DNA from: Lepidodermella squamata
Lineage: Eukaryota; Animalia; Gastrotricha
DNA length: 64,000 nucleotides
Assembly: GCA_047495785.1 (NCBI GenBank)
Contig: JBLDXI010000042.1
Coordinates: 124,001-188,000, forward strand
Direction: 5' to 3'
Part shown: positions 2,728-33,464 of the stretch, piece after piece
Layout of the letters: each line of letters starts with the position of its first letter
How positions within the stretch are numbered: the first letter of the stretch is position 1
Notes under the pieces: model-generated
What the model saw: the letters and a program-made list of their open reading frames with translations, nothing else
Databases searched by the model: none
What the model was told of the DNA's origin: nothing
Made by a program: the position numbers and the translations under genes

Positions 2728-2780
2728 GTTTTATCGCGTTAGAAAATTAAGGTTATACCGTTTTTTATGAACCCCGACTC

Positions 2781-2788
2781 TTTTTATA
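2781..2788 (-). promoter_or_regulatory. TATA box of C1
   Basis: TATAAAAA on the minus strand ~55-60 nt upstream of the ATG. The equivalent position is conserved upstream of C2 (~12769-12776) and C3 (~51967-51976). Confidence 0.6.
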
Positions 2789-8790: not shown

Positions 8791-8831
8791 TCTTCAAGAT
8801 AAAGTTGAATTATTTCCTTTCAACTGTTAAC

Positions 8832-9152
8832 ATGGCATTTAAGCTTGCATTAGTGATCGTCGTTTTGGTGAGCATTCTCCTGTGGTATTTCGTATTCTAC
8901 CATTTTATTTCCAAATAGGCCGCTGTTACTCTTACGGCGTTCGCAGTAAGGGACGGAGATTCTTGCTGTTATATCGGGAGTAAGCCGGGTGTATGGAAGA
9001 AAAGCTTGAACACGGGTCTGCTGGTTTGCACCATGTCATGGGGAAAGCGCGAGGAAGCGCAGCTGGAGGAAACGGCGCGGGAAGCCTGTAAACTTCCAAA
9101 CGGAAAGCCTGGCTATCGGCATGCTGGCGCTGCAAACTGCTTCAAATACTAG
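8832..9152 (+). CDS. Secreted peptide precursor P1 (exons 8832-8867, 8919-9152), ~89 aa; 3' end truncated by a rearrangement
   Basis: MAFKLALVIVVL|AAVTLTAFA-VRDGDSCCYIGSKPGVWKKSLNTGLLVCTMSW-GKR-EEAQLEETAR-EACKLPNGKPGYRHAGAANCFKY*. 51-nt phase-0 intron. Confidence 0.75.
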
Positions 9153-9567
9153 GATAACCTATTGTAACAACTCGTAAATTTCAATCTTAAGTCCTTTGGT
9201 TCGGCTCATTATAAGTTTCCCCCAGATTTTACAAAGGTTTCATCTTAATGAATGACGACGAAATGAACCGACAATATTTCGAAGCAGCGAAGAACACATC
9301 ACCGGTTCAAAAAGCTAGCTATTTGTTCACGAGGGCACATGCGCCAAATGATCCGGCCGATGCGATAACAACTCGAAAACAATCTTGCTATAAATGCGCT
9401 TATTGAATCAGTCTCTTTTCTGCTGCTAAAAGTGCTCGATAATATCGATTAATCATAATTACGGTTTTTTGCTAACCATGCGAATAACTGACAAAAGGAT
9501 CTTCGAGTTGACTGAACGAGCTCAGTTCAGTCATTTATTCATCTTTTCAATCATCTTTCATTAAGTA

Positions 9568-9781
9568 ATGGAAAATCTCTCTTCAGCCACCGCTGCTCTG
9601 GTAAAATCAATTATCCTTCCCTAATTTACATTGAAGGTATTCGATTATCTAACAGGTTGCGGTCAGCATTGTCTTGGCTTTGGCTGATGCTTACATAAAG
9701 AATGAAGATGGATGCATCTTCCATCTTTACACAAACTTGGCTACTAGGGGCTCGACACAACGACCAAAGCAGAGACTTTGA
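9568..9781 (+). pseudogene. Peptide gene P2 (B-type, paralog of P4), frameshifted and truncated
   Basis: MENLSSATAAL|VAVSIVLALADAYIKNEDGCIF, then a frameshift; homology ends before the second Cys. Confidence 0.75.
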
Positions 9782-10071
9782 TTTGATTCGATTTGATTGT
9801 GATTTGATTTGATTTAGGCCGTTTTTTGATTATCTGATTTCATTATAGTCCAGCTTTGCAGGATCAAAGTCCATATTTAGCTGATTAAAACGCTCTATCG
9901 GCCGAAGGTTTTCGCGTGTACCTTTCCTGTAGCACCGGGGTTTTTTCGATGTACCTACCAAAAAATTCGACCCCCAGATTATTATATTTTCTTGAAGGTC
10001 ACGGAAATCCAAGATCATTGGTCGATGTCCCGGATTTTTCCGGCTCATCCTTATTACGTAATAACAAAAAA

Positions 10072-10727
10072 ACACTTACTCATATTTGAGTATAAGTCGC
10101 CATCGTGCAAACTGCTTACTCACCTATATGAGTATACGGCGTTTTCTAGCAAATCTCATTTACTCACTTTACTTTATTGCTATACTCACCTATGAGTATT
10201 TAGCGCTAGCTTGGAAACATTGCAAGACCAAATTATGCAGCTATCATGTGGTTTTAGGGTTTGGTTGTTGAAAAGACACTACCAGCGATTTTTTGGAATT
10301 TTTTTTCTTGGATAGCGTGCCTTCTAAAAATAAGCTGTTTTAAAGGAAAAATACTTTGAAACATGTCGCATCTCATGTAGGTGAAATGAAAAAATCAGCT
10401 AATTCTGGAATTCGATAATCTATCTATAATCGATAATCGATGATCGATAATCAGTGAATTCTTATTCAAGAAATGAGTATAGGGTGATTTTGACATCAGA
10501 TTTGATGTGACTTGGTGTGACTTGTGTCTTGGGGTGCATCATGGGTATTTTCAGTTTTCAGATGCACAGGTCTCGCGTAAAAAAATCGCAAAAAAGCAAC
10601 ACTTCTGTGTACTCATATATGAGTATACGGCGAATTTCTGCAAATTGGAGGCTACTCAAATGTGAGTATATAGCGAATTTCTGCAAATCCGAGAATACTC
10701 ACATATGAGTATTTGGACGATAGAGTG
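10072..10727. mobile_element. Non-autonomous DNA-element remnant with subterminal palindromic repeats
   Basis: Six copies of TACTCA(n3-6)TGAGTAT, three clustered at each end; no credible ORF; TIR/TSD not resolved. Confidence 0.45.
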
Positions 10728-10752
10728 TTCATGAGTTCGTCAGTTCGTCAGT

Positions 10753-10753
<1 letters not shown>

Positions 10754-10800
<47 letters not shown>
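10754..10800. repeat. (CGT)n microsatellite
   Basis: About 15 CGT units with one interruption. Confidence 0.95.
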
Positions 10801-11249
10801 AAAAAATTGCAGAAAAATACTAAATGACCGTAGAAATTGGAACCGTTGGACTTGGAATCGAACCTTAAAATATCTTGCATAGCACTGAGCACGCAGCAGA
10901 AAATAGCGCAGTAAGGCCATTATTTCTGAAATCTACCTGTAACTCAACCTTTGTCACACCTGTGTGAATCATCATCTACCCCGCCAAAATTGTTGAAGGT
11001 TGTATTATTGCAGATTCGAATTCTGCGCATCAAATTAGGGTACTCTTGTCAAACCCGAAAGCTTAATGCCGATCTCACCGGGAAAAACATAAGTGGACTT
11101 TTGTCCTGATTTTTGGACATTTCGTTTTTTGCAATTTCTGAGGTTCCATTGAGCCATTCTCTTCTGTGAAAAAATTGACGCTTTACCCATGATGAGGCAC
11201 ATCTTTTGACACCGAGCTTACCTACACCTCGCGTACTCATCGCACAGGT

Positions 11250-11337
11250 GAGAAGGTGAGATTTTTTATTTTGATCAATAATTATTCCGAGGTCTTTCAC
11301 TGAGTCCACAGCAGCAAGCTCGACGTCTTTAATTTTG
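11250..11337 (-). mobile_element. Short LINE RT fragment
   Basis: KIKDVELAAVDSVKDLGIIID is nearly identical to the LINE at ~32522-32600. Confidence 0.8.
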
Positions 11338-11427
11338 GATATATTGGTCAAATATATGCATGAAATACTCTAATCAGTTGAAATACAAGAAGTTCGATGT
11401 TTATTTTTCCATTGTAACTGTTAAAAT

Positions 11428-12715
11428 TTAGTCGAAACGATCGCAGGAGAAGGTAGTGAAGCCAGCTGCAGTTTGGAAGGCCTGTTTAGCCGCTTCCTTA
11501 ACGTCGCTACCATCTTGAGACATGCCGGCTTCGACAACGGCGGCAACAGTTTGGGTTGTAGCCACTGAAACCTTCTTGATAAAGTCCTTGCAGCCTTGCT
11601 TGTCCTTGCAGCAGATAGCTCCAAAGTCGTACGGGCGTGAGCTCGGACAGTTAGCCCAGCAGACAGGCCCAACACCGGAATACTTGTCCGGGCAGTACGG
11701 GTAGCAGAGACCAGCATCGTACTCCTTATCCGCGCCGCAGCCCATCGGGTAGCCAGCGCCACGGCCGTAGCTGTGCTTCGTGTAGGTGTGGACGTCAATG
11801 CGGCACGTGCAGCCGTCATTCTTGTATGGCGGGTCGTTTTTTGGGCAGAAGGAGCAGCCCTTCTCGAAGGTTAGGCCGCAAATGTCGTACCATGGGCACG
11901 CCTTGTTATTGGATGAGATGATCTTAACGTTGCGGGTGCAGAAGGCTCCGGTATCGGTGTAACCGGACTTGCAGCTTTCCCAGCACTGAAAGGATTTAAG
12001 AGGAGTTTTTTTGAGTAAAAAGCTTGAAAAAACCTGATTTTGGTAATTTCCGGGTTTTGACCCTTACCAGTCCCCTTGGGTGGTATTCCACCCAATCGAA
12101 ATTTCACGCCAACATCTTTTTTATAGCGCGGAATTTTTCGAACCAAATAACCAAAGGGGTGTTACCAAAATCTGTAACTAGGAATACCCCTGAAAAACCA
12201 GATTCGGTAAATTTGAGTAAAAAGCCCATATTAACCCCGAAAAAACCGATTCCGGTAAATTTGAGTAAAAAGCCCATATTAACCCCGAAAAAACCGATTC
12301 TGGTAAATTCGAGTAAAAACCCGAGAAAAACCGAGAAAGACTTTCAACTTACAACTGGGCCAACTCCTTTGTAGCCTTCGCGGCAGTAGGGATAGCACAA
12401 GAGTCCGTCCTTTTGGAGGCCCTCAGCGCACGTGTTGATTGGCTTTCCAACACCACGGCCGTGCGAGCTCTTCCAACACAGACCGAGCTTTTCCTTCATG
12501 ATGACAACAACATTGGTGAAGTTGACGTTAGCCAGGATGTTGCTGATTAGGTTTCCAATCGGGTTGAACTCTTCGTCCTCGTCAACCCAGCCAGACAAGC
12601 TTTTACGAGCGTCGACTGAGGAAAGGAAATTCTGAAAAATCTGAAGCTAGATCAGGCGGGTTTTACCTTGAGACGCTACGGCAACGAGCAAAAGAGCGGC
12701 AACAAAAAATCTCAT
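11428..12715 (-). CDS. Secreted Cys-rich repeat protein C2, 3 exons (12667-12715, 12353-12615, 11428-11985), ~289 aa
   Basis: Close paralog of C1 with identical exon lengths (49/263/558 nt) and an intact frame. Confidence 0.9.
12200..12320. repeat. 48-bp tandem repeat (~2.5 copies) in C2 intron 2
   Basis: ggtaaatttgagtaaaaagcccatattaaccccgaaaaaaccgattc is repeated. Confidence 0.85.
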
Positions 12716-14172
12716 GTTTTATCGCGTTAGAAAATTAAGGTTATACCGTTTTTTATGAACCCTGACTCTTTTTATACCCTTAGCGAGTTGCGTGCGAGAT
12801 GGGCCCATTTATCGCGAATTTCGTCGGGCGAGCGTTTTTTTCCGGTTCCTATGCAAACACCGCGTGAGAGTGTTTTATCATTCTGGCTCAGGTAGCACCC
12901 GCTTTATCGCTCAGTTGTTATCGCGTCGCTCGCTAAAATCATCAGGAAAAGGACTAGTTTCTACTGACATGTCTGCAAGTGGTGTGAAAAAGAATGTTTT
13001 AGCAGAATTAACTGACGGCGAAAGGTCATTAAGAGCACAGGAGCTAGAGATTATTAAGGCAGCATTATTGAGTTCACAAATTCCAGCACGGAGCTAACTG
13101 CACCACGTCATGATATATCTTGAAAATGCTCTCAAAGTCACTAAGGGTTTCTTGATGCATTTGGGCGTGACAGAAGAGGAAACATAGGCGCTTCTACAGG
13201 AGCTTCTACAGGAGATAAAGCACGCGTCTTGGTAATTTGACATAGGGACACCAAATATAAGTATCTCGAAATAATGTCTTACAAGTTAACAGTATCCGAA
13301 AATAGGAAAAATGTCGTTGGGTTTGTAAATGAGTACAGTAAGTAAAGAATTACAAACTTCCCGTGAATGGGAGATTAATTATCACGCGAATGGCGAGCTT
13401 GCAGCTAATTAATTCGTAGCTTAGGATTTCCCCGTCTGTTTCCAAAGCCTGCTAGCAGATGACACAACTCTTGCATCTATTCTTTCAGCGGAAGCAACCT
13501 TCAAAAAATGGGACGAAAACCTAAAACAGTGCCACTAGCCACTATTTCGAAAACATTCTTGAAAAGAGACTTGGTCACGTTCTGAGTGATGACCGGCCTT
13601 AAATCTCGAAATATACACTTAAATGGGAAGTTGTGAATGTAATAGGGAAGTTCCGGCTATCTCAAATAGGGAAAAGGCCCTTTCATAAGGCGTATTTTGA
13701 AAGAATGACAATACGATTAATGCAATGAAATTACTTTCCAAAGATCTCGACCTGTTTCTTTCAAATGCAAAGACTCCTGAACATTCAGCAATAAGACCTG
13801 AATACTGAAACAAGTAACAGTTAACAAGTGAAAAGTGAGGTATGGCGTATTTTTGTATTCTCAGCAGATGACAAAACGTAATTTACTTGAAGAGGAGCGA
13901 TTCTTGGAACATTTGGTGTTCTTACTTAGTTATTCTTGACCTTTAGGAGCCTCCTATCCACCTTAATAGACGGGAGAAGTCAAAGGCTAATTTAGGTACG
14001 CAGTAGCTATTCGGGTTGTTTCGGGTAGTAGGAATGACCTTGTTATCCAAGCCCGTTTTATTACACTGTTAGTTTGTGGCACCAGCTCTCAACTCTTAAT
14101 GTATCATCAACATAAAAAAGATTTCTAATCGCCATTTGCAAAGCTCAAAGCAACGCCAATGCCTCAAATCAC

Positions 14173-16263
14173 TCATTCGACATACGTTTCACATGCTGTG
14201 AATGATACAGTGTTGTCGCAATCAATTAAATACATCAAAAAATCATAAATCAAGCCACAATTGTTATTATTCAACGAGTTGCCAAACTGAGTTTGATTGA
14301 ATGTGAAAGCGGTACCATCCGACCATTTGAGAACGCCTGCTTCTGGAGCAAGACCCAGCCATGCATAGCCGGTGGGTACAAGGCTGCCAACCTGGGCAAG
14401 GTCGGAAGCCGTTTTAACAGTTGCCAAAATGGCACCCTGTTTCGAACACTTTTTGGCTGCAGTTGAGTGAGCATAAGAACCCGTATCAAGGTAAAACACT
14501 TTCTTTCGAGCGTTTTGGCACTGCGATTCGCCGCTGAACGTGACATTTGCAGGAAATCGCCTCTCAGTGCTGGCGTCGCAGCTGATTGAGCTCGGTCGGC
14601 AGGTTACTGTACCGTCAGCAGTTCGCAGGCATCGATGCTGAGGGATCTATAAATAAATTTCGTATTTCATGAAATACCAAGGAACGCTCGGGGGTTTTTC
14701 CAAGGATGGACAAATTTATCCATGTAAATTTAGATTACTGTATTGCGATTAGTATCAGCGAAACAGCAGGTTAAAGTTACGGCTCAATACTACGAAAAAT
14801 AGGAAATCATGATATCCTAAAAGAAATGAACTCACAGGAGGCGTTATATCCGTAATGCATTTGCCGTGGTTGAGTTGAAATGACTGCAAGCCAGAGAACA
14901 GCTTAACCTGTAGTAGGAAAACAGCTGATAGCGGAGAAAAAACCGTGCTTTTTGTTAAGCTTTACCTGAGATTGATCTAGCGGGCATGCAGCGTAGCAAG
15001 ACAGTCGGCCGGACGAATCCTTGCACGAGACAGCATTCTGCAGAACAAGAGTTACCGCAATAATAATTGCCAAACCAGAAAGGATAACATACTCCGAGCA
15101 TGCAGACTGCACGGTTGATGTAAACTCTCGATGAGTATTGCTGAGTTTCGTTGCTAGCCATACAGCCGGAGCTTTGCGGTCGGCAGTCATTGAACTTTTT
15201 GTTCGTAGAATCAAAGCACCGAATGTGTGGTTTTTCGCTGACCGGAACTGTGACTGTAATGACAATAGGTCCGTAGTTTCCCCCCAAGTTTCCGCCTCAA
15301 TTTGCGATCAATTTTATTCCGGGAAAATTGTTCAAAATTCAAACTGGTTAAGATAAGGAAATCGACCTAAGAGTTCCCCCTTTAGTCTTAGACTGAGTTC
15401 ACCGTACGGGCCGATGAGCTGGTAGGGATGATCCCTAGCGGTAAATCACGAACCTGTTCCATTGGTACAAGGCGCAAGAGTCGTAAACAGAGTTGTTCCA
15501 GTTAACTAGGAAAACAAGACTCATCGTCACTCACCAATCCTCAAATTTTTCAAATCGTTCACCCAGTTGTTGGGGCAGAAGTAAGGGTCTGGAACACAGG
15601 TCATGGTGACGTTGTTCGAAGTACAGCGCCTGAATTTTAGAGTCTCGAATGATACATATATTAAGCCTTAATCCGTATGGCCAAGTTTCCTGAATTCTCA
15701 CCTCGAATGCAGCTTTCTTTTTCTCGCATTCATCGAGGTTGAATTTCAAGCTCAACGTCGCATTCTGGTTGTCGAACCAGAACGTCTGAGGCATAAATTA
15801 TATTATAGTGATTAGAAATTACAGGTTAATCGAATAAGGCTTACATTCATATCACCAGGATTGTTACAGCCAATGTTTCCAGGTACGCAAAACGGGGTGA
15901 GCGCCTCGTATTTGTAGCACATCCTGGCATTCTATAGATAAAACAGACAAAAATTGCAAATAGATATAGCAGAAAGGTTATAGCAGACCCCGGTGTTGCA
16001 GACCCCCGTTGTTCGGAAGATTGGGCCGAGCTATATAGATTGAGAGTTATTCCAATTGTTTGGCATTTCAAACAGTTTCAATCAGAATTCAGAAAAACCT
16101 GATAATTAGCGAGTGGGTCACAGCCATTGGCAGCTGGTATGCAGCTGGTAAATCGGTTGCTGAACTGCGAGAAGCATCGAACCCAGTTCAACGGGTCCTT
16201 GCCCCATGCCATGTCGCTCGATGCGAGCACAAGTCCCAGAAGAACGAAATAATATCCGGCCAT
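14173..16263 (-). CDS. Secreted multi-exon protein L1: six novel Cys modules plus a C-terminal C-type lectin domain
   Basis: Signal peptide MAGYYFVLLGLVLASSDMAWG. About 10 short exons are homologous, largely exon for exon, to L2 (34698-37927). CTLD hallmarks: A..KC...GAILATV, AWLGL, LKWSDG, NNCG..DC....FTACE. Confidence 0.8.
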
Positions 16264-17715
16264 TTTATTTGGCTAATTTCGAATAAAAGCTCGGAAAAAT
16301 GCTATCAAATGAAATGAAAATGAAATGAAATACTACGTGTTTCGACTTGAAAACTAGAGACTCGAAAATACTCGTCCTAATTTCAACTTGGACAATAATA
16401 TTGTCTCCGCCCAATTTTCCAATAGGCATTTCAGAAATAATCGCGTGATTCTCAACCAAGCGCGTTTCATAAAATAATTGGCAAAAACTTGTCTTGTCCT
16501 TATTCTTTCTATTTAACAAATGCACTTTCAATTGGTGACCTGATTTGAACATTAATTGTCTTCCACTTTTTTATTCCATTGTATTTTGCAATTTATATTC
16601 ATCGCGGAAACGCCTTATGATCATGCATTCAGCACGTCTCGACGAATTGACATTGGAAATATTATCTTGACCGAAGCAATTGAAGGATCACGGCGACGAT
16701 AGGTACCGTGGGACATTTGTCTCTTCATCGATATAGTTTTTTCCTTTGAGCCAAATCGAAATTGTGGTAAGCTCGAACGCTGAAATGATGCAACTGGCTT
16801 GAAGTTCTTGAGAATTTAGGACATATATCAATGTGAAATGGGAAAATAGACAAAATTTGGACAAATGCAAGCAGTCTCAGTTTGAGAAACCTCGAAGCAT
16901 GCCTCGGGTGGCTGAGAGTTGAATGGACATTGCCAGCAAAATTATCTAACTTGAAATTTATCACCAGCGCCAATGCGTCGTTAGTGAGCATGCATTATCC
17001 CTGAAAAATGTTATCGAGTTATTCAAACGCCCGTATCAGCCGAAAAATTCAACTTCTAATAAAAATTAAGATTCTGAAATATTAGCATTAGTGCTTACTC
17101 TGGCCATTTTTTTCTCGATGACCATCCATCATCAACCATCCATTACCAACCAGTTTGGGAAAATGACTGATTATAATGCATGTCTCACATGAATGACAAC
17201 GGAAGTCATATCAAATTATTTTCCAACGATCTCGATTCTTTCTAGCCCGATTACTCACTGGAAAGATTGTCTCGCGCTCAGATGATTTCTACAATCATTA
17301 ATCTTGCCAGTGCTTAAGACTTAAGAAATTATTCTATTTGTTCAATTAGTCGCTCTACCGCCGTCACCGCTATCTGTCATGAAGAGTCAATGTTTCCCGA
17401 GATGCTTGATTTATTCATTGAAAATAAACTGAACACCAGTCACTGGCAAATTAAGAGCTTAAGTACTGACAATTAGTTATCACATGATCATATATCACAA
17501 GTCCTAGATCACAGCTATGGTTATTCATCTTATTAGTCATGACCGGGATGCCGCCGTAACACCAATCGTTACACTATCACATGATAATATCAACTTGTTA
17601 TGCTCAACTCATCGTCGATCCAGCCGGCTTTATTAATAGCCTGTTTTCATAAACAACGGACTTCATTATAATAAATTTTTATAAAGTCTAAATATTTCTC
17701 TCAATTGTCTTACAC

Positions 17716-18058
17716 ATGACAGCAAAGATTGCATTGGCGATCGTCGTTTTGGTAAGAAGCTCCTCATAGTCTGTAACATGTAATAATCTATCGTTTATAG
17801 GCCGCTGTTACTCTCGTGGCACTCGCACACAAGGAAGGAGATTCCTGCAGTTTCAGCGATGGTCTACCGGGCAAATATAAGAAAATCGCAAAAACTGGTC
17901 AAATCGTTTGCTCCTTTTCATTGGGAAAGCGTGAGGAAGAACAGCCAGAGCAAGTGGCACGGGAAACCTGTACACTTCCTAACGGAAAGCCTGGCAAGTA
18001 TCGGCCTGTTGGTATTGGCGATCTCAAATATTGTGGGCCTATCAAGTGGAGACGATAG
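17716..18058 (+). CDS. Secreted peptide precursor P3 (exons 17716-17751, 17801-18058), 97 aa
   Basis: MTAKIALAIVVL|AAVTLVALA-HKEGDSCSFSDGLPGKYKKIAKTGQIVCSFSL-GKR-EEEQPEQVAR-ETCTLPNGKPGKYRPVGIGDLKYCGPIKWRR*. AATAAA at ~18184. Confidence 0.88.
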
Positions 18059-19393
18059 ACTGGCGTCCGCTGGTCGAATGAGTGATGCTGATGGGTGTGA
18101 TGAGGAGGTTGCAGCAATTTTGCGAATGCGGTGCGAGGTTGCATGAATACAAAATTTTGAGACATGGTGTTATTCCATACTTAATAAAATTAAAACTATT
18201 TAGAACTCCCGTGACGGTTACTTTCGATTTTCAATAATTCATTCATTTATATTCCTTTTTCAATCACGGAAGAAGTAAATTTGGATCTTTTGGTTTTAAG
18301 GTTCCTCCCAAGTTCGGGGATACTGCTTCACACGAACGCAGAGATGAATACTGCGTTCATAAAAAAATGTTGCCAGTGCAAAACTGGTCTCGGCCAATTA
18401 TTCTCCCAGTCACGTTTCCTCCTAGAAACAGGAAATCCCTGTGGTATCCGTTTGTCCTCATCAATCTAAGAGCAGCATTTGGAACCCCTCACCTCAAATC
18501 CCCGTGTGAGATATCCGAGTCGAGCTAAGCAATAGAGCTCTGTGATCGAAGTTATGCGGATTCAGATTCAAATAAACCTGGGCAGTTTCGAACGGCGCGC
18601 GAAGTAGGATTCTCGGCCGGAATTTTATGACAGAAGGGTTCCCAGTCGTCTTTTTGGGGTTTCACCTCATTTCCCCCTGTACTTTGCGCACTGGTTTCAA
18701 GCCATGTTACATCGGGATCCCAATCAAAAGTCATTGGTCTTACAAAGGTTAGTTTTTTTACAAAGGTTTATATCATATTGATTGACGACGATTGAAGTTA
18801 ATCGGATTCAGATTATAATAAACATGGGCAGTTTCGAACGGTTCGTGACATAGGATGCTCGAACTAGGGGGTAATATCAGGCCGGAACTTTATGACCAAA
18901 GGGTTCCCAGTCGTCGTTTTGGGTTTCCCCCTGAACTTCGCGCAATGGTTTCAAACCATGTTAAATCGGGATAACCTATTGTAACAACTCGGGGTCCCAA
19001 TTAAAAGGTCATTGGCTCTGCTACAAATCATTTTCCCCGGTTCCCTTAGTTTTTACAAAGATTTTATAATATTGATTGACGACGAAATGAACCGATAAGA
19101 TGACGGAGCAACGAACAAAACATCACCGGTTCAAAAACTGGCTATTTGCTCACGTGGGGAATTGTGCTATGAACCGGGCGATGCGATAACAACTCAACAA
19201 AACAATGTTGTTGTGAATCCCCGTATTGAATCAGTCGCTCTCCTACCACCCACCGCTACGGCTAACGCTGCTCTGTTATCGATTAATCATTTTTGCGCAC
19301 CGAGAAAATGACTGGAAAAGGGCTCGTCGAGTAGTCCGAACGAGCTCAGGTCATTAATTCATTTTTATCTTTTCAATCATCTTTCATTAAGTC

Positions 19394-19748
19394 ATGGCGA
19401 ATCTTGTTTCCGTCACCGCTGCTTTGGTAAAATCACCTATCCTTTTTCCCAAATTCAAGTTGAAGGCATTGCTTTATCCAACAGGTTGCGCTCAGCATTG
19501 TCTTGGCATCGGCTGATGCTCAGATAAAGAATGGAGATGATTGCATCTTTCGTGGACAAAAGCCTGGCCACTATGAACTGAATACAAGGACCAACAAGTG
19601 GGTATGCATGCCGAAGCCACAAGGACGCGAAGCTGCGGCGGAGGAGGCAAGCAGAGGAGAAGGAGACTACTACTGCCTCACCAGTAAATTGGCATTAGGC
19701 CATTGGATAATACAGAATCGCAAATCAATTTGCGTCAAGAATAACTGA
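19394..19748 (+). CDS. Secreted peptide precursor P4 (B-type; exons 19394-19426, 19485-19748), 98 aa
   Basis: MANLVSVTAAL|VALSIVLASADA-QIKNGDDCIFRGQKPGHYELNTRTNKWVCMPKPQ-GR-EAAAEEASR-GEGDYYCLTSKLALGHWIIQNRKSICVKNN*. AATAAA at ~19868. Confidence 0.88.
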
Positions 19749-20591
19749 ATCACGAGGCTTCAAGCATCGACCGACTCAGATATCAGATCGACTGATGAGA
19801 GGAAATATCGGGCGCTGTCCTGAAGTTGCACATAGCTCCAATCAATGGAAATATTTCGATTAATTTGAATAAAATATAAGTATGGACTTTTTTCTTGTTA
19901 TTTTAAACAACGCCTTATCTAATCGTCCTTGAAAGAAATTGTGCATCTGAGACGAGATTTTTGTTTCATTTGCAAAATAGCTCATCTGCTGAACCTATTT
20001 TAGATTTCACCTCATTATGAGGGTGTCCAATGTCCAACACCGATTTTCCAAGGAAAGATGATTTGGGGAGGATTCTCACACAATAATTATGTAGCTTTCA
20101 GTCCAAAATGATGGCAGGATCGGGCAGGATGGTGCTGGCTTAGCGATCGGTATGGTCTTGGGAGTATTACAAAGCTGAAGGCTGCCCTACTGAATCCTCT
20201 TTCTACCTGCCCGATCCTTGGGACCAATACTGTATGGACTCGACACTAGCCACTTTTCTGCTGGACAGGAAAAAAATCAATAATTTCGAAGCGAGAAAAT
20301 CGCATGAAAAAATGTTTTTTTTACGCATCAAAAGCATCATTTTTACGCATCCGCCCGTCAATTGTTATTTTTTCAATTTGTTTAATCAGTCGCTCCGCCG
20401 CTATTCTACTGGCTTGATGCACCGCCAAGTCATAATAGCCTGCCTGGGTAAACAATCGAAGCGAAGGTTGACGTAGGTACCGAATGACAGGCAAATTGAT
20501 CATCGAGAAGCTCATCAGTGCTAGGTTCATTATTCAAGTTTCTATCTTCAAAAAAGAGTCGAATTGTTTCCCTCAAGTTAAAAAAAAACTC

Positions 20592-20945
20592 ATGGCATCT
20601 AAAATTTCATTGGCGATCGTCGTTTTGGTGAGGAGGATCATCGTTATTTAGTCTGTAAATGATCTGTATCGTTATAATTTCACATAGGCTGTTGTTACTC
20701 TCATGGCATCGGCACAAGAAAAACAACACAAGGAAGGAGATGCGTGCACATTTAAGGGTTTTCTCCCGGGCAAATGGACGAAACGCGCATCAACGGGCCA
20801 AGTGATTTGCATCACGACAGTTGGAAAGCGTGAGGACGCACGGGCAGAGGAGACGGCTCGAAATAAGGAAGAATGCCCCAGCAAGAACGGCAAGCCTGGC
20901 GTTATTAAGCAGTACAATGGCATAAGGGTCTGCAGTTGGATTTAG
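20592..20945 (+). CDS. Secreted peptide precursor P5 (exons 20592-20627, 20688-20945), 97 aa
   Basis: MASKISLAIVVL|AVVTLMASA-QEKQHKEGDACTFKGFLPGKWTKRASTGQVICITTV-GKR-EDARAEETAR-NKEECPSKNGKPGVIKQYNGIRVCSWI*. AATAAA at ~21041. Confidence 0.88.
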
Positions 20946-22331: not shown

Positions 22332-22658
22332 ATGGCAACTAAGCTAACATTGGTGATCGTCGTTTTGGTAAGAATTCTCCTGTGGTATTTTTTAGTCTAC
22401 CATTTTTATTATACCAGGCCGCTGTTACTCTCACGGCGTTCGCACACAAGGACGGAGATTCTTGCAGTTATATCGGAGGTATGCCTGGTACATGGAAGAA
22501 AAGCTTGAAAACGGGTTTGCACCATGTCATGGGGAAAGCGTGAAGCGCAGCCGGAGGAAGCGGCACGGGAAGCCTGTAAACTTCCAAACGGGAAGCCTGG
22601 CAAGTATCGGCATGCTGGTGCTGCCGGTTTCAAATACTGTGCGCCTATCCATGCGTGA
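22332..22658 (+). pseudogene. Peptide gene P6 (close to P1), frameshifted by an 8-nt deletion
   Basis: MATKLTLVIVVL|AAVTLTAFAHKDGDSCSYIGGMPGTWKKSLKTG, then loss of ctgctggt relative to P1 gives a stop at 22541-22543. The downstream frame still reads CTMSWGKREAQPEEAAREACKLPNGKPGKYRHAGAAGFKYCAPIHA*. Confidence 0.82.
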
Positions 22659-24277: not shown

Positions 24278-25131
24278 GATAAAGTCTAAATATTTCTCTC
24301 AATTGTCTTACACATGACAGCAAAGATTGCATTGGCGATCGTCGTTTTGGTAAGAAGCTCCTCATAGTCTGTAACATGTAATAATCTATCGTTTATAGGC
24401 CGCTGTTACTCTCGTGGCACTCGCACACAAGGAAGGAGATTCCTGCAGTTTCAGCGATGGTCTACCGGGCAAATATAAGAAAATCGCAAAAACTGGTCAA
24501 ATTGTTTGCTCCTTTTCATTGGGAAAGCGTGAGGAAGAACAGCCAGAGCAAGTGGCACGGGAAACCTGTACACTTCCTAACGGAAAGCCTGGCAAGTATC
24601 GGCCTGTTGGTATTGGCGATCTCAAATATTGTGGGCCTATCAAGTGGAGACGATAGACTGGCGTCCGAGGCGAGCTAAGCAATAGAGCTCTGTGATCGAA
24701 GTTATGCGGATTCAGATTCAAATAAACCTGGGCAGTTTCGAACGGCGCGCGAAGTAGGATTCTCGGCCGGAATTTTATGACAGAAGGGTTCCCAGTCGTC
24801 TTTTTGGGGTTTCACCTCATTTCCCCCTGTACTTTGCGCATTGGTTTCAAGCCATGTTACATCGGGATCCCAATCAAAAGTCATTGGTCTTACAAAGGTT
24901 AGTTTTTTACAAAGGTTTATATCATATTGATTGACGACGAGATTGATTGATTGAAATGAACTGACGAGATGACGAAGCAAAGAAGAAAACATCCCCGGTA
25001 TAAAAGCTGGCTATTTGCTCACGTGGGGAATTGTGCTATGAACCGGGCGATGCGATAACAACTCAACAAAACAATGTTGTTGTGAATCCCCGTATTGAAT
25101 CAGTCGCTCTCCTACCACTCACCGCTACGGC
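24278..25131. repeat. Duplicated block matching ~17680-18068, ~18521-18790 and ~19137-19263
   Basis: Near-identical sequence blocks separated by deletions relative to the P3-P4 interval. Confidence 0.85.
24314..24656 (+). CDS. Secreted peptide precursor P7 (exons 24314-24349, 24399-24656), protein identical to P3
   Basis: Recent duplicate of 17716-18058 with one synonymous difference seen (atc/att); the 3' UTR is deleted. Confidence 0.82.
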
Positions 25132-25250
25132 TAAGCCTGCTCTATTATTAATTTCGGTTTTTTGCTAACCATACCAATGACTGGCACAAAGATCTTCGAG
25201 TTGGCCGAACGAGCTCAGATCATTAATTCATTTTCATCTTTCATCAATTA

Positions 25251-25430
25251 ATGGCATATCTCTCTTCAGTAACCGCTGTTCTGGTAAAATCAACTATCCC
25301 TATTTCCTAATTCACGTTGAATGTTTTACTTCATCTAACAGGTTGCGCTCAGCTCTCAGCATTGTCTTGGCATCGGCTGATGCTTATATAAAGAATGGAG
25401 ATGGATGTATCTTCAGTGGACACGAACTCG
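25251..25430 (+). pseudogene. Peptide gene P8 (B-type), 7-nt duplication frameshift and truncation
   Basis: MAYLSSVTAVL|VALS, then an extra tctcagc gives a stop at 25378-25380. The remnant ADAYIKNGDGCIFSGHEL ends at a 44-bp tandem repeat. Confidence 0.78.
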
Positions 25431-25672
25431 AAGATCCATGTGATGATGCCGAATAAGAAATGCTAAATTCATATGAGATCCATGTGATGATGCCTTATAC
25501 GAAATGCTAAAAATTTCGAAAGGCGCTGTTGTCTAAACTGGATAATTAAAATGGGGTTGGGTTGCAATGGTTTTTTATTGTAACGATAATTTGAAGATAA
25601 ATTCACACGAGTGCTGCTCTCTGCCCTATCCTCATCGCACCCAAAAGCCTGTTTTTAATCATCAAGAGACTG

Positions 25673-25934
25673 TCAATACGTTTCCTTCGGCTGCAATTCC
25701 TCGCGCTTTCCCGCATTCGGATCGCAAAACAGTTGATTTTGCCCGAGATGTAACCCAAAAATGTGCACGCATCTCCTTCCTTCGGTTGCTGTTGCTGTTT
25801 TTGTTGTTCAGCGAATGACATGAGAGTAAGAGCGGCCTATGCATAAATATAACCAATGATTATTAAAGACTATAACGATGAACGATGATGATCCTCACCA
25901 AAACGACAATCGCCAATGAAAGCTTAGCTGCCAT
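25673..25934 (-). pseudogene. Peptide gene P9 (inverted, P5-like), frameshifted, second peptide lost
   Basis: MAAKLSLAIVVL|AALTLMSFAEQQKQQQQPKEGDACTFLGYISGK, then a deletion; the shifted frame reads NQLFCDPNAGKREELQPKETY*. Confidence 0.78.
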
Positions 25935-27115
25935 GGTTTTTTAATAATTGAAAGAAATAATTCGAATGTGAAAACTTGAATAATGAACCGAGTATAGATG
26001 AGCTTCTCGATAAGCACTTTGCCAGTCATCTCACTAGGCTTACGTCGGCCATCGGCTCGATTGTTTACAAGCTATTATTACTGGCATGTTAGACCGACGA
26101 TCAAATGCGCCGTAACACCGTAACAGAGCGACAGAGGCAGATGAGGCAGAGTTAGAGGCAGAGCGACAGAGCAGCAGAGCGCGGACAAGCACAGTAATAG
26201 TAAAAACATAATAATAAGTGCAAGGCGATTCTCCCAGTGAGTAATACTATGGTAATAAACTGACCTGCGAACTAATCGTCCTAAGTGACGGCAAAGAGTG
26301 AATGGACTGAGATGAGAGGTGCCCAAGCTAATTCTCTATAAAAGCAACTGATCTGCGGCTTTGAACTGCCCTGCTGCCATCAGCATGGATCATGGATTCA
26401 CCCCTCATCCCAACTTTTGGTCTGAATTCACATGTATCACATCCTTAAAGAAGCTATTTCAACGACAATAAGATGAACATGCGGTTTAAGAATATCTCCC
26501 GCAACTTGAATTGTTCCTCTGTCGATGGTTAGATGGTTGGATTTCTTCATATCAAATTCGCTTAAAGCCGGGCTGCTAGGCTTAAAAAAACAGGCGTAGT
26601 CACCCGTTAAACCAGTGCTTTTCAAGAAAGCCTGAAACCGTTTGACAAGTTACTGCACAATTTCAGCGAGAAATCACCCTTCGATATTTGAACCGCAGAT
26701 TTCCTCAATGTTGCAATTTTCAGTTGTTCACAATTCACAATGAGAAATCAATTGTTAAATATCTGCAAAATGTTGGTGCCATCATGTAGAGAATGCAGTT
26801 CTGAGTTAGACTCTTGGGGTCTCAACTTTAATGGGTCAGCTGAGGATAAGAAAAAAATGCCTTAGGACCCCGGCAAAAACACAAGAAGAACCATTTATCG
26901 GAAAACATCAGGCCGGAAAATTCTTAGTGGCTCAGACCTGGCCAACCTAGTGCTAAAGATCGCTGATCGGCCTGACCAGTGGATCGAAATCAATTCTTCA
27001 AGCTGGTCAGGATCATAGCCAAACAATGCCAATGCACAAATTCACATCCTTATAACTCAAAAATCTCTCTACACAACATTGAGGTCTGGCGATGTATGGG
27101 AAATATTTCTTAGCT

Positions 27116-28381
27116 TCATTCTAGCATCTTGCGGCCATAATATAAGATGATCGCCGAAACTGTGAGAAACGCACTCGTCGCCACTAGAACATCGATGATT
27201 CTCAGCAGTCTAAAACCTTTCGAGGCGTCCCCTCTCCATAGACGAGTTTTGCCGAATTTATGCTCGCTGAGAGTAAGCGTGACCAAGGCGTAGATAGTGA
27301 TTAGGCCACAGATAACGTTCGCGCTTATCAAGATGTTGATCAGATAAATTTCATCGGCGGTCCGTGGGATGAGGGAGTCGACCAGCGCTAATAGGACTGA
27401 CGTCGCCAGGTTGACTGTAATGCAGAAGTTTGGCCGATCAGGGTGTCGCGGGTCCATGATCAGCGCTGAAATTTGCAAGATGAACAGGGTCGAAGAAGGG
27501 ACGAGAACATTGCCAACGTAGTACTCATGCTTCCGCTTCAGCATCAAGTTGATCGTTGCATGTGGATATGTCTTCGCATTTGAAAGCGATCCGTTGAACT
27601 CGATAAACTGCCAAATTTCGTTGTTGCGCAGAGGCGAATAAAGAACATCATAGTGTATCAACTCGATTTTCAAGTCAACTTCATTCGCAAAGTTCTCATT
27701 CTCAAACTCAAAAGTGCAAGTTGCGGTATCGAATGGGAATTTCGTATACTTGAAAAAGAAACAGCTGGTTGTGAACGGACGAACTGTGTAGATGAGAAAC
27801 CTTGGTTTAGGACCAACAAATGGTTGAACTTTGATCAATCTCTCGCTGTAAGTGCTGCGATAAAAGCAGTTTTTCAGCAATATATAAACGGTTACTATCT
27901 TAACGGCCGAGATTCGCCAACTGCGTTCAAGTGCTGCATGTCAGGCCACCAAACTTGATCGACTGGAACTTCGAATTGAACTCGAGATAATTGAGTAATG
28001 TTGAGTTTTTTGTAACCAGGCCACAACTCGCTTCTGATATCACGATCGCACGGGATCTCCCAAAATATGCGAAGCGACATCGTCGCCGTTAGACTAGGCA
28101 AATAGGCCGTGAAGCACAAATTCCCTATATTTTTCATAATTTGTTTCATACCTCATATCAAGATCGCTAACATCCTTAATGTAAGCAAGACTCAAGTGGA
28201 GGTAGCTGTTTATCGGCTGTGAGAAATTCTCCGTCTGCTGGTGATATTCCGCGGGCAAATTTCCAGCTAGGGCAATGGGGCACAGCTCGAAAAAGCGCTT
28301 TTTCATAGCGTCGGGTTCGTACTTTTTACTAGACACTGAATGCATGAGCGCACAAAAAATGAGTGCATTGGAAATCTGCAT
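27116..28381 (-). CDS. Divergent Cys-loop ligand-gated ion channel subunit, 3 exons (28152-28381, 27896-28093, 27116-27854), ~388 aa
   Basis: Signal peptide; loop A VWWPD; Cys loop CFFFKYTKFPFDTATC; pre-M1 LKRKHEYYV; four TM helices. Introns of 58 and 41 nt keep frame. Confidence 0.82.
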
Positions 28382-29489
28382 GAGAATTCGCACACTTGAC
28401 GAACTTCTTCAATGTTGATGAAATATTCGACCTGTTGCTAGTCAAGTGAGGAGGGCTGAAAGTTCAATCGATCAAAATGCTTCCATACATATCCACCGGA
28501 AATTGACTATGCCGCCGAACCTTCGACCCGCACTTTTTTCGATTTTAGTTGCAATTTATTACCGAATGCACATGCCTTCCTTCATCAAGTCGAATCCGAA
28601 AACAACAGATATATGGAAATAAATGCAATATCTACCATTTGCAACCATAAAATTTAGACTTTGAACAGACAGTTAGAGAACTCAGCATTACGAGATGTTA
28701 TTCTTTCATTTCGAGCAGGCATGGAAACACTGTTGTAATCGGCCAAACTGGACAGAAAAGTGACAATTTTGAGTCCGCTGTTTCGTCAATATTAAAAGGG
28801 TTTGGGACGTACTTCAGTGAAAAATCTTCAAAATATGCGTTCGCTTCGCTAGTTTTTTCGGTTGAAATCAAAAGTCATTATGGCAAATATACAGCGAGCA
28901 CAATATTTTTAATCCCTGCCAGATCGCTCACTGAATAGCAATTTGACTTTACGCAAGAGACAGGGCGCATAGAGATCACGATAAAAGACTCCTTAAATGC
29001 AATATCGATTATCGAAACAATTTTCGTGCTGGGCTAAGACAACTAGATTTTGCAACGATCGAACAGTTTACGTAACAACCAAAATCTAAGTAACGCCTGG
29101 GAAAGACTGCTGTAACCTCATTTTTAGAAGGTTTTGGTGGAAAACCCTCAAAATTTCCTCCCTTCGCTGGTGTTGTTGGTATAAAAGTTTCTTGTAATTT
29201 TCACCAATGCGGGACAACAATTTCCCCTTCGAGATAGGTAACTACCAAAAATCATTTGTAACAACCAATCGTTTGCTTAATTTTTAATTTTTAATTGGAA
29301 TTAAATTTTTGAATTCAGGAAAAAGAGGTCCTTGAAGGCTTCATAGTCTGCATTTCCACCACACTGAAAAAAATTGGATAAGAGGGCGGAGAAGTTGATT
29401 TAATTTGATTCAGACAATTTTGTTGGTTATTTTGTTTTGCAAAATCTTTCACAATGATTTGATTCGCAAATGATTCAGCCCCTTGATTT

Positions 29490-30020
29490 ACCTTGGAGTA
29501 ATGAAGGAGCCGCAGAATCGACCGAAAAAATTATCCTTTGCATTCGCCGAGGCCTCAACTTGAGCGTGAAAACTGGCGCATCAACAACAATCCGGTAGAA
29601 CAGTTTTTTCGGTGGTAGTCGCCGCCTGTCAATGTTGCGGGTGTACCAACAAACCGCGCGGCTTCGATTCGTTGGAAGCAGTTTTTCGCTCTCCAGGGGC
29701 GTCAACATCAAGGGCCAGTCTTTCCTTTCCCTGCCTATTACTGAAATGCGTCGGGAATTGAAAGAAGTCGCTAGCCGACTGGCGAAAGATGATGTGACTC
29801 TACAACAGCCTCTTCCCGAAAGGCTGATCGTCGACGAACAGTCAAATCGGAACATCGCCGGCTACATCACGGCTAAAATAAACGCGAAACGAGTCGCTGG
29901 TAAGAAACTAGCTCAAGATCTCATCCAGCCAGCACCCTCAAACAGCCGAGGCGGATTGGCAAGGCCCAATCGGGGTGTGCTGTCTATCGTCAATCATGCC
30001 ACTTATGATTGGATGTTAGC
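29490..30020 (+). mobile_element. Degraded P-element/THAP9-like transposase C-terminal fragment
   Basis: With two compensating frameshifts it reads KTG(R)INNNPVEQFFGG (cf. the NQDxxExxFG motif), then NIAGYITAKI...SRGGLARP, which resembles the P-type C-terminal region. No TIRs seen. Confidence 0.45.
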
Positions 30021-30415
30021 AATAATAATAATAATGATTAGAATTGAACTGAAGAGAACAAATTAAGTGATATATAGTCAAATGACAAAAAAATAGGAAT
30101 GCCATGTAAGGAATGGTGGCAGCTTTCTTTCATCAGCTGCTAGCTGAATTTATGAAAAATTGCACTCAGCTTCACTCGGTTACCTCTCACAGTTTTTAGC
30201 CGTTATTTATGCCAAGTATACTTGAAGGCTATTTAAGGATTAAATTATCTCCGTTTTGTTGAATCAGTAGCTCTACCGCCCTCAAAGGCTAAGTGCTCAC
30301 TTAACGATCGATTCATGTGTTGACAGAAAAAGCCGTTGTCGAGAATCTTTGGCAAATTTAATTCATTCTTCCATTTTATTCTTTGTTCATTTTCATTTTC
30401 TCTCCAATTTCTATT

Positions 30416-30731
30416 ATGGCTAAGCTCTTTCTTCTAACCGTTGTTTCGGTAAAAATTTCGGTCAGAGATGAATGAATTCTCGATGAATGTAATATTTTTC
30501 CAGGCTGCAATTGTCATTGCATCGGCCATCAAGCCAGGCGACAAATGTGAAACCCAAGGCGTACAGGGCCGTTACGAGCGCGATGAAACCGGTTCTGCTT
30601 GGATTTGCGCAGTTGAAGAAGATGGGCGTGAAGGTGGGCGGATAGGCAGGGAGTGTAAGACGAGTAATGGCAAGCCTGACAGGATTACATTAGGCGACGG
30701 TGGTTGGCATTGCCGAGCAGCTCAAGGATGA
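30416..30731 (+). CDS. Secreted peptide precursor P10 (exons 30416-30448, 30504-30731), 86 aa
   Basis: MAKLFLLTVVS|AAIVIASA-IKPGDKCETQGVQGRYERDETGSAWICAVEED-GR-EGGR-IGRECKTSNGKPDRITLGDGGWHCRAAQG*. AATAAA at ~30865. Confidence 0.85.
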
Positions 30732-30900
30732 ATGTAACACTGCTGCTGCTGCTGGGTGCGATGAGGAGGAGCAGCAAGATGAGAAGCAAGAATATCTGTG
30801 ACGAGTTTTTCAAATCGCCAAACCGTCTATATGAAAGCTAGATCTTGAATAGACTCGTTTGTTGAATAAAATGAGGCATGAGACTTTTCTCAGGGGAACG

Positions 30901-31207
30901 CCGCATTGTGTTTGAGGTTGTAAGTTGAAAAAAATCCGCACGCTGATTGGTCAGTTGGCTCGTATCCATGACTCCGCCTTGCTACTTGATCGTGCGATCT
31001 ATATAATTTGTGGCTTTTATTATTTTTATGAAGGCCGTATCGTAGCACGCGTTTCCAACAAATGCGTAAAACCATTCATAAAAAGATATTTTTTGCAAAC
31101 ATTTTATGGATCGCACGATCAAGTAGCAAGGCGGAATCATGGATACGAGCCAACTGACCAATCAGCGTGCGGATTTTTTTCAACTTACAACCTCAAACAC
31201 AATGCGG
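30901..31207. mobile_element. Foldback/MITE with ~100-bp near-perfect terminal inverted repeats
   Basis: 30901-30999 is the reverse complement of 31108-31207 with 1-2 differences; AT-rich spacer. Confidence 0.85.
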
Positions 31208-31999
31208 GCATTGTCCTTACAAACATTATTTTTTTTTAATATTTTTCAAGTGCCTTTTGCGATTGTCATACTGCGAGGCAATAAGCCAGAAAACAGACGA
31301 AACGTTCATTTTTATTGTTACTTATTGGTGGAAATTTTCCTTTTCCCTGCCATCAACTTTCATTGCAATATTTTTGTACTGGGTTCGTTTTAATGTGAGA
31401 TAAAACAGGGCGCAAAGTACGGGATGAGGGAGTGAGGGGTGTCGTAGCCCCGAGTTCGGCAGGCCAAGGTGGAAATTACCGAAAAAACCACCGATGGGTC
31501 TTTGGTCATACAAATTGAGCCCGAAGATACTCCCTAGTTTGAGGATTCCACATTGAGCATGAGCCTGTGGATACCCTGAGCGACAATTTCGGGCCTTTTA
31601 ACTGCCTAAATCAAAAAAACTAAATATGCAAATTAGCGAGAGTTTGTCTGAGGACAGTTTTATGCTGAAAGTGTAGTTTTTTGAGGAGCTGGGGCAGCAG
31701 AACCGCGGTGAGAGTTTCGCTGTGAGGAATGCTTTCTACTGCGCACTGCGCAAAAAACTTGCTCCTCGCCAATAGAACTTTCACTTTGGGCCGTTAGCAA
31801 TTTATCGTTACTAATACTATACTAATGAAGCAATTTATCGTTCACTGTCTAGATCATCTAATTTTTCGCTGGCCCCTGGGAAAATCGTTGCTTAATCAAT
31901 TTCGTCGTTTTTATAGGTCTATGAGCCGTTTTCAAAATTCAGCACCATTAACAAGTTACGTAATGTAACACCGGCGTTACAATGGGCGGATGCCCGCCT

Positions 32000-33060
32000 T
32001 ATACCTGTTGTGAGACGCAGTTGTTGTCATGTATTACTGATTGGCTGAAACTATTAGATCAACTCATTGATATAATTGTTATATACCTTGACCTGTCAAA
32101 AGCCTTCGATGTTGTGCCGATCTCTTTGTTACTATCCAAGCTCTCAGATATCAATATTTGTGGAAACCTGCACGCCTGGATAAAGGCTTTCTTGAGCGAC
32201 CGATTTTTCAGGGTAGCAGTGAATAACAGTGTGTCATCATGGTCGGCGGTCACTTCTGGAGTACCTCAGGGCTCTGTTCTAGGGCCGCTGCTGTTCTTGA
32301 TTTTCACGACAGAAGTAAATGTGTTGGTCGAGAGATCGATTGCAAAATTCTTCGCCGACGATACGAAGCTATAGCGGGCGATCCGTTCTTTAAGCGATTG
32401 CATCGAACTGCAGAAAGACTTGGATGAAATCATTAACTGGTTTGACGCTAACGGCCTGTCTGTGAATTCGAAAAAATGCGTCGTGCTTATACTCGGGCAA
32501 AACAAATTTATGTTCAAATTCAAAATTAAAGATGTCGAGCTTGATGTTGTGGACTCAGTGAAAGACCTCGGAATAATTATTGATAAAAATCTCACCTTCT
32601 CTGAGCACTGTAACGCATTGGCAACTAAATGTCACAGAATTAACGGTGTTATTTGTAAATCGTTCGCCTCTAAATCCTTACGTCTCAAAGCCTATAAAAC
32701 GTATACTTTATCTCGTCTTGACTTTTGCCCGTCTGTTTACTCACCTTACCTAATAACAGATATTGAAAAGGTCGAATCGATTCAAATCCGCTTCACAAAA
32801 CGTTTGCTATATCGTAGTACCTACTACTCATCGATCGAAGGCTCCTCCTATGAAGAACGACTAAAAAAGCTTGGGTTGTGTTCACTCGAATTAAGACGCT
32901 ACCAACACGATCTTGCGTTATGTCATAAAATGTACCAGCGTGCTGTGGACTTAAATTTCTCTGACTTCTTTAATATTTCCACTAATCCGCGCTTACCGCA
33001 TCATTCTGTTACAATGGAAAGCTACAGTCATTCTCCCCTTACCCCCCGGTCTCGGAACAC
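32000..33060 (+). mobile_element. 5'-truncated non-LTR retrotransposon (CR1/L2-like RT), one nonsense codon
   Basis: RT motifs YLDLSKAFD, SGVPQGSVLGPLLF, FADDTKL, KDLGI and SYEERLKKLGL. An in-frame TAG at 32372-32374 splits the ORF. Confidence 0.9.
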
Positions 33061-33173
33061 TGCTATCAAGCGCGTGTCAGCTCTCGCTTATTTATTTATT
33101 ATTTCGCTTATTGTTGCACCTCATTTGCGGCCGCTCTTCATCCTCATCGTAGCCGGCAGCATTGGTGTGCAAT

Positions 33174-33464
33174 TTATAATGTAGAGATCGTCGCACTGCA
33201 GTAGTATTTGCCACCATAGCCCATTTTAATCCTACCAGCCTTTCCATTTGGAGCCGTGCACCTCTCACCAAGCTTTCCTACTTCTCGCTGAGCTGCCTCG
33301 CGGCTCTTAGTGACTCCTTGTCCAGGGGCTTCTGCATAATCTGCATTTGCCATGATGGTAACAGCGGCCTATTTGGAGAGATAACAATGCATTACAAAGT
33401 CTGTAAACCATTATGTAAGACGTCTCACCAAAACGGCCAACACCAGTACGAGCTTAGCTGCCAT
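33174..33464 (-). CDS. Secreted peptide precursor P11, single-peptide variant (exons 33429-33464, 33174-33368), 76 aa
   Basis: MAAKLVLVLAVL|AAVTIMANA-DYAEAPGQGVTKSREAAQREVGKLGERCTAPNGKAGRIKMGYGGKYYCSATISTL*. Same intron position and upstream/3' motifs as the family; absent from the ORF track. Confidence 0.82.

Follow-up and report, generated by a model that had tools for sequence, protein, structure and literature searches.

The 64-kb window analysed here (the whole stretch of 64,000 nucleotides (nt) from the contig JBLDXI010000042.1 of the gastrotrich Lepidodermella squamata) contains a cluster of small intron-split genes whose outermost start codons lie at 8832 and 33464 and whose predicted products are short secreted peptides, mostly closed by a single disulfide. 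Two nhmmer profiles, one for exon 1 and the donor site and the other for the acceptor site and the start of exon 2, recovered an identical set of 11 loci spanning 8777-33529, and none beyond it in the window; g9570 and g25250, which lay outside the profile training set, were still recovered at E 5e-5 to 7e-4. Intact models were taken from a scan for ATG with 8-15 codons, a GT..AG intron of 40-89 nt and an open Cys-containing frame. It is well supported, on the strength of the translations, that these genes encode a secreted precursor giving two disulfide-closed peptides, one of them amidated. Each peptide would represent one copy of an ancestral module of ~26 residues, the ring of which is the segment between its two cysteines. 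The loci, with modules 1 and 2 in precursor order, are as follows.

8832-9152, plus strand: locus 1 (g8832), intact two-module gene; exon 1 8832-8867, intron 8868-8918 (51 nt), exon 2 8919-9152; modules at 8952-9041 and 9075-9149, with an x16 ring in module 2.
9568-9781, plus strand: locus 2 (g9570), decayed type-B copy; exon 1 9568-9600, 55-nt intron and a short one-Cys open frame.
17716-18058, plus strand: locus 3 (g17716), intact two-module gene; exon 1 17716-17751, intron of 49 nt, exon 2 17801-18058; modules at 17834-17923 and 17957-18046; AATAAA 125 nt 3' of the stop codon.
19394-19748, plus strand: locus 4 (g19394), intact type-B gene; exon 1 19394-19426 (11 codons), intron of 58 nt, exon 2 19485-19748; module 1 at 19530-19619, then G-R.
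20592-20945, plus strand: locus 5 (g20592), intact two-module gene; exon 1 20592-20627, intron of 60 nt, exon 2 20688-20945; AATAAA 96 nt 3' of the stop codon.
22332-22658, plus strand: locus 6 (g22330), broken; exon 1 and a 50-nt intron intact, one frameshifting indel in exon 2.
24314-24656, plus strand: locus 7 (g24314), intact recent twin of locus 3, encoding an identical protein.
25251-25422, plus strand: locus 8 (g25250), decayed and truncated type-B copy, from nhmmer.
25603-25934, minus strand: locus 9 (g25934), broken; exon 1 25934-25899 and a 62-nt intron intact, exon 2 frameshifted.
30416-30731, plus strand: locus 10 (g30416), intact divergent two-module gene; exon 1 30416-30448 (11 codons), intron of 55 nt, exon 2 30504-30731; AATAAA 134 nt 3' of the stop codon.
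33174-33464, minus strand: locus 11 (g33464), intact one-module gene; exon 1 33464-33429, intron of 60 nt, exon 2 33368-33174.
8752-8831, plus strand: example of the upstream block shared by type-A loci.

Seven loci are intact (8832, 17716, 19394, 20592, 24314, 30416 and, on the minus strand, 33464) and encode six distinct precursors, those at 17716 and 24314 being identical, whereas four are frameshifted or truncated (9568, 22332, 25251 and, on the minus strand, 25934). The original prediction, made from the letters alone, had announced 11 peptide genes: the 11 loci were all recovered by nhmmer and the gene models, with the 11-12-codon first exon and the 49-62-nt phase-0 intron that it had described, but four of them are decayed copies, leaving seven intact Cys-framed frames, and locus 11 has a single module. 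Exon 1 begins with ATG and comprises 11 or 12 codons at every locus, and every intron (49-62 nt, phase 0) falls inside the signal peptide and has a GT[AG]A donor and a [CT]AG acceptor. In 9 of the 11 introns the length is not a multiple of three, there is an in-frame stop, or both; intron G+C content is 0.29-0.36, compared to ~0.42 for the window. Among the six older type-A loci, exon 1 has a mean pairwise identity of 0.81 and the signal-coding part of exon 2 one of 0.79, compared to 0.64 for the intron. An AATAAA lies 65-134 nt 3' of the stop codon in six of the seven intact genes. Upstream, a block of ~80 nt common to type-A loci has a mean pairwise identity of 0.69 (0.64 in introns), for which we infer a promoter role, and three loci have an ATAAAG-like element 33-36 nt 5' of the ATG.

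The intact precursors are about 75-97 residues long and run in the order signal, short basic-ended pro-piece, peptide 1, acidic spacer, peptide 2. Exon 1 provides Met, a Lys at position 3-4 (in type-A genes) and a hydrophobic stretch, and exon 2 begins with hydrophobic residues followed by a small-x-small (A-x-A-type) site, so that an n-region Lys, ~17 uncharged residues and the A-x-A-type site arise only when the two exons are read together; jointly they are predicted to form a signal peptide of normal length. The pro-piece that follows ends in Lys or Arg. Module 1 begins [EDNP]-G-D-x-C and has a C-x19-20-C ring, and 4-5 residues past its second Cys comes G-K-R in three type-A genes or G-R in two divergent genes. 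In the five intact genes with a module 1, G-(K)-R is followed by a mostly acidic spacer of 7-12 residues ending in Arg or Lys, and then by module 2, with the pattern C-x3-N-G-K-P-G ... C and a C-x16-20-C ring. The C terminus is Arg-Arg in one gene and Gly in another, which are trimming and amidation signals. Locus 11 retains the second module only, with a Cys-free pro-piece in place of module 1, and the second Cys pair of locus 4 (19662-19745) cannot be aligned with module 2 of the other genes. The products are predicted to be hydrophilic and to have 23-36 residues.

Several details of the original prediction held for these products: the motif C-x3-[NDG]-x2-P-G-x-aromatic ... C occurs in the modules of intact genes, net charge is +2 to +4 except for the acidic peptide 1 of locus 10 (-3), and Gln N termini are possible at loci 4 and 5. 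Its C-x18-20-C ring had to be widened to C-x16-20-C, and one module has a third Cys. That residue, in module 1 of locus 1 (8952-9041), is adjacent, bringing the precursor to five Cys, and could lead to an intermolecular disulfide. The processing signature of G-K-R and acidic spacers and the homology of the two modules described below had no part in that prediction.

Gly-Lys-Arg is the standard signal for amidation plus cleavage by a convertase, a carboxypeptidase and an amidating enzyme. The build seen in the translations (signal peptide, basic sites, Gly as amide donor, spacers) is that of an amidated prohormone, which is a kind of precursor and not a homology family. From it we infer secretion, cleavage and amidation, as we do fold and ecological role from the evidence given below. 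Signal peptidase would cut after the small-x-small site, and the short N-terminal piece ending in Lys or Arg may then be removed. Cutting of prohormone-convertase type at G-K-R or G-R, and then the action of a carboxypeptidase and an amidating enzyme, would leave peptide 1 with a C-terminal amide; judged by its G-(K)-R site, peptide 1 is probably amidated. Release of the acidic spacer at its terminal Arg or Lys would free peptide 2.

Profiles of module 1 and module 2 (five versus five sequences) were found by hhalign to be homologous, with a probability of 83% and an E of 9.6e-6, and the precursor is an internal duplication because the two profiles align Cys to Cys. In an alignment of ten modules, from which the second Cys pair of locus 4 was left aside, identity to the reference module is 20-60% and none of the 20 ring cysteines is lost; no position other than the two Cys is invariant, with one Gly coming close. 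AlphaFold, run on the six-sequence alignment of exon 2, gave two separate three-stranded sheets with a predicted local distance difference test score (pLDDT) of 70-79 for the modules and less than 50 for signal and spacer, while the ten-module alignment gave a mean pLDDT of 83.8 and strands at residues 4-6, 12-17 and 24-28, with Cys on strands 1 and 3 of the single-module model. As modelled, the module would be a three-stranded antiparallel sheet with one disulfide linking strand 1 to strand 3, in which a Gly or Pro-Gly turn and an aromatic residue on strand 2 would be conserved, with free variation in the tails and in the loop joining strand 2 to strand 3. Because both alignments are shallow and consist of paralogues alone, the fold is a prediction.

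Protein searches were made with exon 2, that is, all but the first 11-12 residues. The six exon 2 translations had no relevant Pfam family at E up to 1, toxin, defensin, antimicrobial and hormone families included, and exon 2 of locus 3 had no match in a word-indexed search of 5.8 billion proteins. Among PDB sequences the best E was 0.34. With Foldseek against PDB, the precursor model reached a best E of 1.1 and the single module one of 3.3, the matches being generic three-stranded sheets only, for example WW and fibronectin type I domains. Metagenome contigs gave no match to the peptide patterns or to a 25-nt DNA pattern of exon 1 and donor, and no matching family emerged from a search of the literature on venom peptides with three strands and a single disulfide. 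A HMMER profile of the six exon 2 translations, applied with no length limit and so covering longer or shorter relatives, had three matches among 1.84 billion representatives, all long repetitive proteins at no more than 17 bits per repeat.

These three were rejected as relatives, given hhalign probabilities of 25% and 7%; their repeats lie outside any Pfam family. Four hexapeptide motifs had a single match in full-text literature, in a paper on a human respiratory virus glycoprotein, and we took it as chance.

Hence no credible relative was found in Pfam, the protein representatives, PDB or metagenome contigs, as had been expected for a new family, and the lack of a match in any library searched fits a family that is undescribed. 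Absence from protein libraries is weak evidence, because small split genes are often unannotated and the DNA-level search was limited to metagenome contigs. The proposal of an undescribed venom, defence or pheromone family was thus borne out as regards a real family with a secreted-precursor build and no library match, but not in its functional part.

Self-comparison of the window revealed three occurrences (8.8-9.7 kb, 17.7-19.6 kb and 24.3-25.4 kb) of a repeat unit in which a type-B gene comes after a type-A gene, besides further single copies and one inverted pair, with segmental identities from 75% to 99.7%. Among the decayed loci, DNA similarity of locus 2 to the 19394 locus ends shortly past the signal and first Cys; locus 6 is nearest to locus 1 (82% DNA identity to 8708-9150); and locus 9, with its second module unrecognisable, has 75% DNA identity to 20448-20774, inverted. 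As global alignment of three decayed copies to intact paralogues ran over sequence that is not homologous, the single-frameshift count of locus 6 was the only one used. Birth-and-death evolution, with peptide genes multiplying and decaying in place, is the best reading of this pattern.

The copies at loci 7 and 3 (24279-24667 versus 17681-18069) are 99.7% identical. An adjoining stretch of the same repeat unit is merely 82% identical (19071-19558 versus 24942-25422), a contrast that suggests gene conversion, mosaic duplication or an assembly artefact; locus 7 could be an assembly duplicate of locus 3.

Nei-Gojobori counts for the three closest distinct intact genes gave, for peptide 1, a proportion of nonsynonymous differences (pN) of 0.32-0.43 and a ratio of nonsynonymous to synonymous divergence (dN/dS) of 0.80-1.08, on small numbers of changes (7-9 synonymous, 24-32 replacement); for the whole signal, pN was 0.15-0.18 and dN/dS 0.43-0.85; and for the G-K-R site and spacer, dN/dS was 0.13-0.70. 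The signal is also the less diverged part at synonymous sites, with about 0.2-0.3 compared to 0.4-0.5 in the mature part. Counts of indel lengths were uninformative, as the divergent peptide 2 region aligns badly in pairwise nucleotide alignments. The expectation that mature codons would exceed signal codons in dN/dS was right in direction (0.8-1.1 versus 0.4-0.85), though not in the mature value being significantly above 1. These counts show relaxed or diversifying change on a fixed scaffold and are too small to prove positive selection.

We see an about even chance that the genes form a lineage-specific family of secretory-granule toxin or host-defence effectors aimed at other organisms. Effectors are more likely than conserved internal signals because the genes multiply and decay in place, and copy turnover, decayed copies, conserved signals with divergent products and the lack of orthologues lead us to favour effectors or reproductive peptides over conserved neuropeptides. 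Several findings weigh against such effectors, besides the shallow alignments (6 and 10 sequences, all paralogues) behind the predicted fold. The dN/dS of peptide 1 is not significantly above 1 and third codon positions are weakly enriched in substitutions (68/76/93), because of which the mature region could be largely unconstrained. A net charge of +2 to +4 and a hydrophilic character are atypical of membrane-active defence peptides; they would suit binding to a specific target and speak against an antimicrobial action by simple membrane lysis. G-K-R processing and acidic spacers, moreover, are equally typical of neuropeptides. A signal peptide, a Gly-Lys-Arg site, acidic spacers and several peptides per precursor are indeed the textbook build of a prohormone, and some neuropeptide families form paralogue clusters, which would favour an endogenous family of neuropeptides or peptide hormones whose two amidated or cyclic peptides were released from neurons or endocrine cells to act on the animal's own receptors. 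We nevertheless regard this as unlikely: decay has hit 4 of the 11 copies, peptide 1 is close to neutral in its evolution, paralogue identities are only 21-57%, and there is no relative among the 1.84 billion representatives, whereas most neuropeptide families have recognisable orthologues.

Reproductive or pheromone peptides, such as gamete attractants or peptides for mate recognition, are fast-evolving and often have several disulfide peptides per precursor. Starfish sperm-activating peptides (asterosap), for example, are single-disulfide peptides of ~34 residues with several per precursor; the searches brought back no sequence of theirs. Fast divergence, copy-number turnover and the small secreted disulfide peptides agree with a reproductive role, but no sequence link to any such family was found and the window has no pointer to gonad expression, and we hold this role to be improbable. 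Still less probable is a non-working, decaying repeat in which open frames and cysteines persist through the youth of the copies. Four decayed copies, a peptide 1 dN/dS near 1 and the weak third-position excess are what it would produce; yet the copies are not young (identity down to 21-33% in protein and ~74% in DNA), and their frames are nonetheless open for 64-87 codons, with the ring cysteines of the ten aligned modules, turn glycine, signal, splice sites, G-(K)-R sites and poly(A) signals all kept and a dN/dS of 0.13-0.85 in signal and spacer. Finally, an orphan Cys-loop receptor gene lies within the cluster (27116-28393, minus strand), and the peptides might be endogenous modulators of that receptor, as a linked ligand-receptor pair. 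Physical linkage is all that speaks for such a pair, linkage is expected by chance among several unrelated neighbours (lectin, retroelement) and the receptor was not co-duplicated with the peptide genes, which makes the pairing very improbable indeed.

By analogy, the precursor of these candidate effectors would work like one of conotoxin or prohormone type, and its products would resemble disulfide-closed hairpin peptides (PMC13001179). The likeness to conotoxin-type superfamilies lies in a signal that is better conserved than the mature region, synonymous sites included (pS about 0.2 against 0.4-0.5), in a fixed Cys frame, in local copy turnover and in frequent C-terminal amidation; the differences are one disulfide here in place of two to five, two homologous modules per precursor, an intron inside the signal peptide and no Pfam toxin match. 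Beta-hairpin antimicrobial peptides (AMPs), cyclised by one or two disulfides, are strongly cationic. Their families, such as arenicin, thanatin, ranacyclin and lactoferricin B, comprise two-stranded hairpins of 11-25 residues with a single-disulfide ring, many of them C-terminally amidated and made from larger precursors (PMC13001179). The peptides described here would share with them one disulfide that ties antiparallel strands into a ring, but are 23-36 residues long and hydrophilic, with three predicted strands and a net charge of +2 to +4 (-3 in one). Exon 2 translations gave no Pfam match to BRICHOS or any other known pro-domain, and BRICHOS-type AMP precursors combine a BRICHOS pro-region and a C-terminal peptide in ~200 residues, compared to 75-97 residues here. 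Multi-peptide amidated neuropeptide precursors likewise combine a signal peptide with Gly-Lys-Arg sites and acidic spacers and give more than one product; it is in the high paralogue divergence, the decayed copies and the lack of detectable orthologues that the present family differs. Anti-lipopolysaccharide factor is a ~100-residue protein with its own Pfam family and a lipopolysaccharide-binding disulfide loop. That loop, of ~20 residues with basic and aromatic residues, is similar to the ring described here, but no Pfam match was found and the peptides here would be short, processed ones.

Taken further, the module could be a new minimal fold family, a single-disulfide three-stranded sheet of ~26 residues, defining an undescribed superfamily of amidated toxins or defence peptides in a poorly sampled animal lineage, in which two diverging copies per precursor would give two effectors per gene; we put this forward tentatively, as somewhat short of an even chance. 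If expressed, these short peptides, with their one disulfide, variable loops and predicted three-stranded sheet, would be a new bioactive-peptide scaffold from a lineage barely represented in public protein data, and the family would be a compact example of birth-and-death evolution, two diverging copies of one module sitting in one precursor. Annotation routinely misses small peptide genes that are split by an intron, and exon-wise profiles could be used to find the family elsewhere.

Unrelated genes are interspersed in the peptide cluster, namely a C-type lectin exon, the Cys-loop receptor gene and an RTE-like reverse transcriptase. Scanned for Rfam families and tRNAs, the window gave no match. 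The other features of the window, including open reading frames (ORFs), are the following.

27116-28393, minus strand: Cys-loop ligand-gated channel gene inside the peptide cluster, in three ORF pieces with apparently short introns between them; weak Pfam matches to ligand-binding and membrane domains.
31982-33184, plus strand: LINE/RTE-like reverse-transcriptase ORFs, flanked by peptide loci 10 and 11; a similar but short fragment occurs near 11049-11351 (minus strand).
55591-56718, minus strand: intronless Cys-loop receptor of 375 residues with a very short intracellular loop, nicotinic/5-HT3-like in a PDB sequence search; one relative, metagenomic and 36% identical, in 5.8 billion proteins.
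53951-55069, minus strand: intronless gene with ankyrin repeats and a SOCS box; three weak ankyrin matches in a homologue search.
60366-62452: Myb/SANT-like ORF (plus strand) beside a Harbinger-type DDE_Tnp_4 transposase ORF (minus strand).
40130-42436, minus strand: intronless ORF of 768 residues that starts like a signal peptide at its N terminus and ends in a multi-pass membrane tail; Pfam gave no match at E 0.01.
44052-44552 and 46045-46509, minus strand: two paralogous small membrane-protein ORFs of no Pfam family.
1479-3155 and 11354-13169: segmental duplicate with 88-89% identity.
10740-10920: triplet-repeat run.

The combination of ankyrin repeats and a SOCS box suggests an animal source, to which the gene content of the window points as a whole. 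Introns of about 50 nt, long receptor genes without introns and best protein relatives that are remote and of invertebrate type speak against a human contig. Four ORFs of the window, looked up as exact sequences, had no record, and the lineage appears poorly sampled or fast-evolving. The Myb/SANT-like and DDE_Tnp_4 ORFs probably belong to one transposon, and there are other transposon ORFs in the window besides Harbinger. The 768-residue ORF may be a very divergent receptor. The paralogous membrane-protein ORFs lie in a local duplication, in which 38333-39856 matches 46232-46762, and the segmental duplicate carries minus-strand Cys-rich ORFs (for example 11428-11745 and 12344-12598) with no Pfam match. 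The triplet-repeat run reads as poly-Asp or poly-Arg in minus-strand frames.

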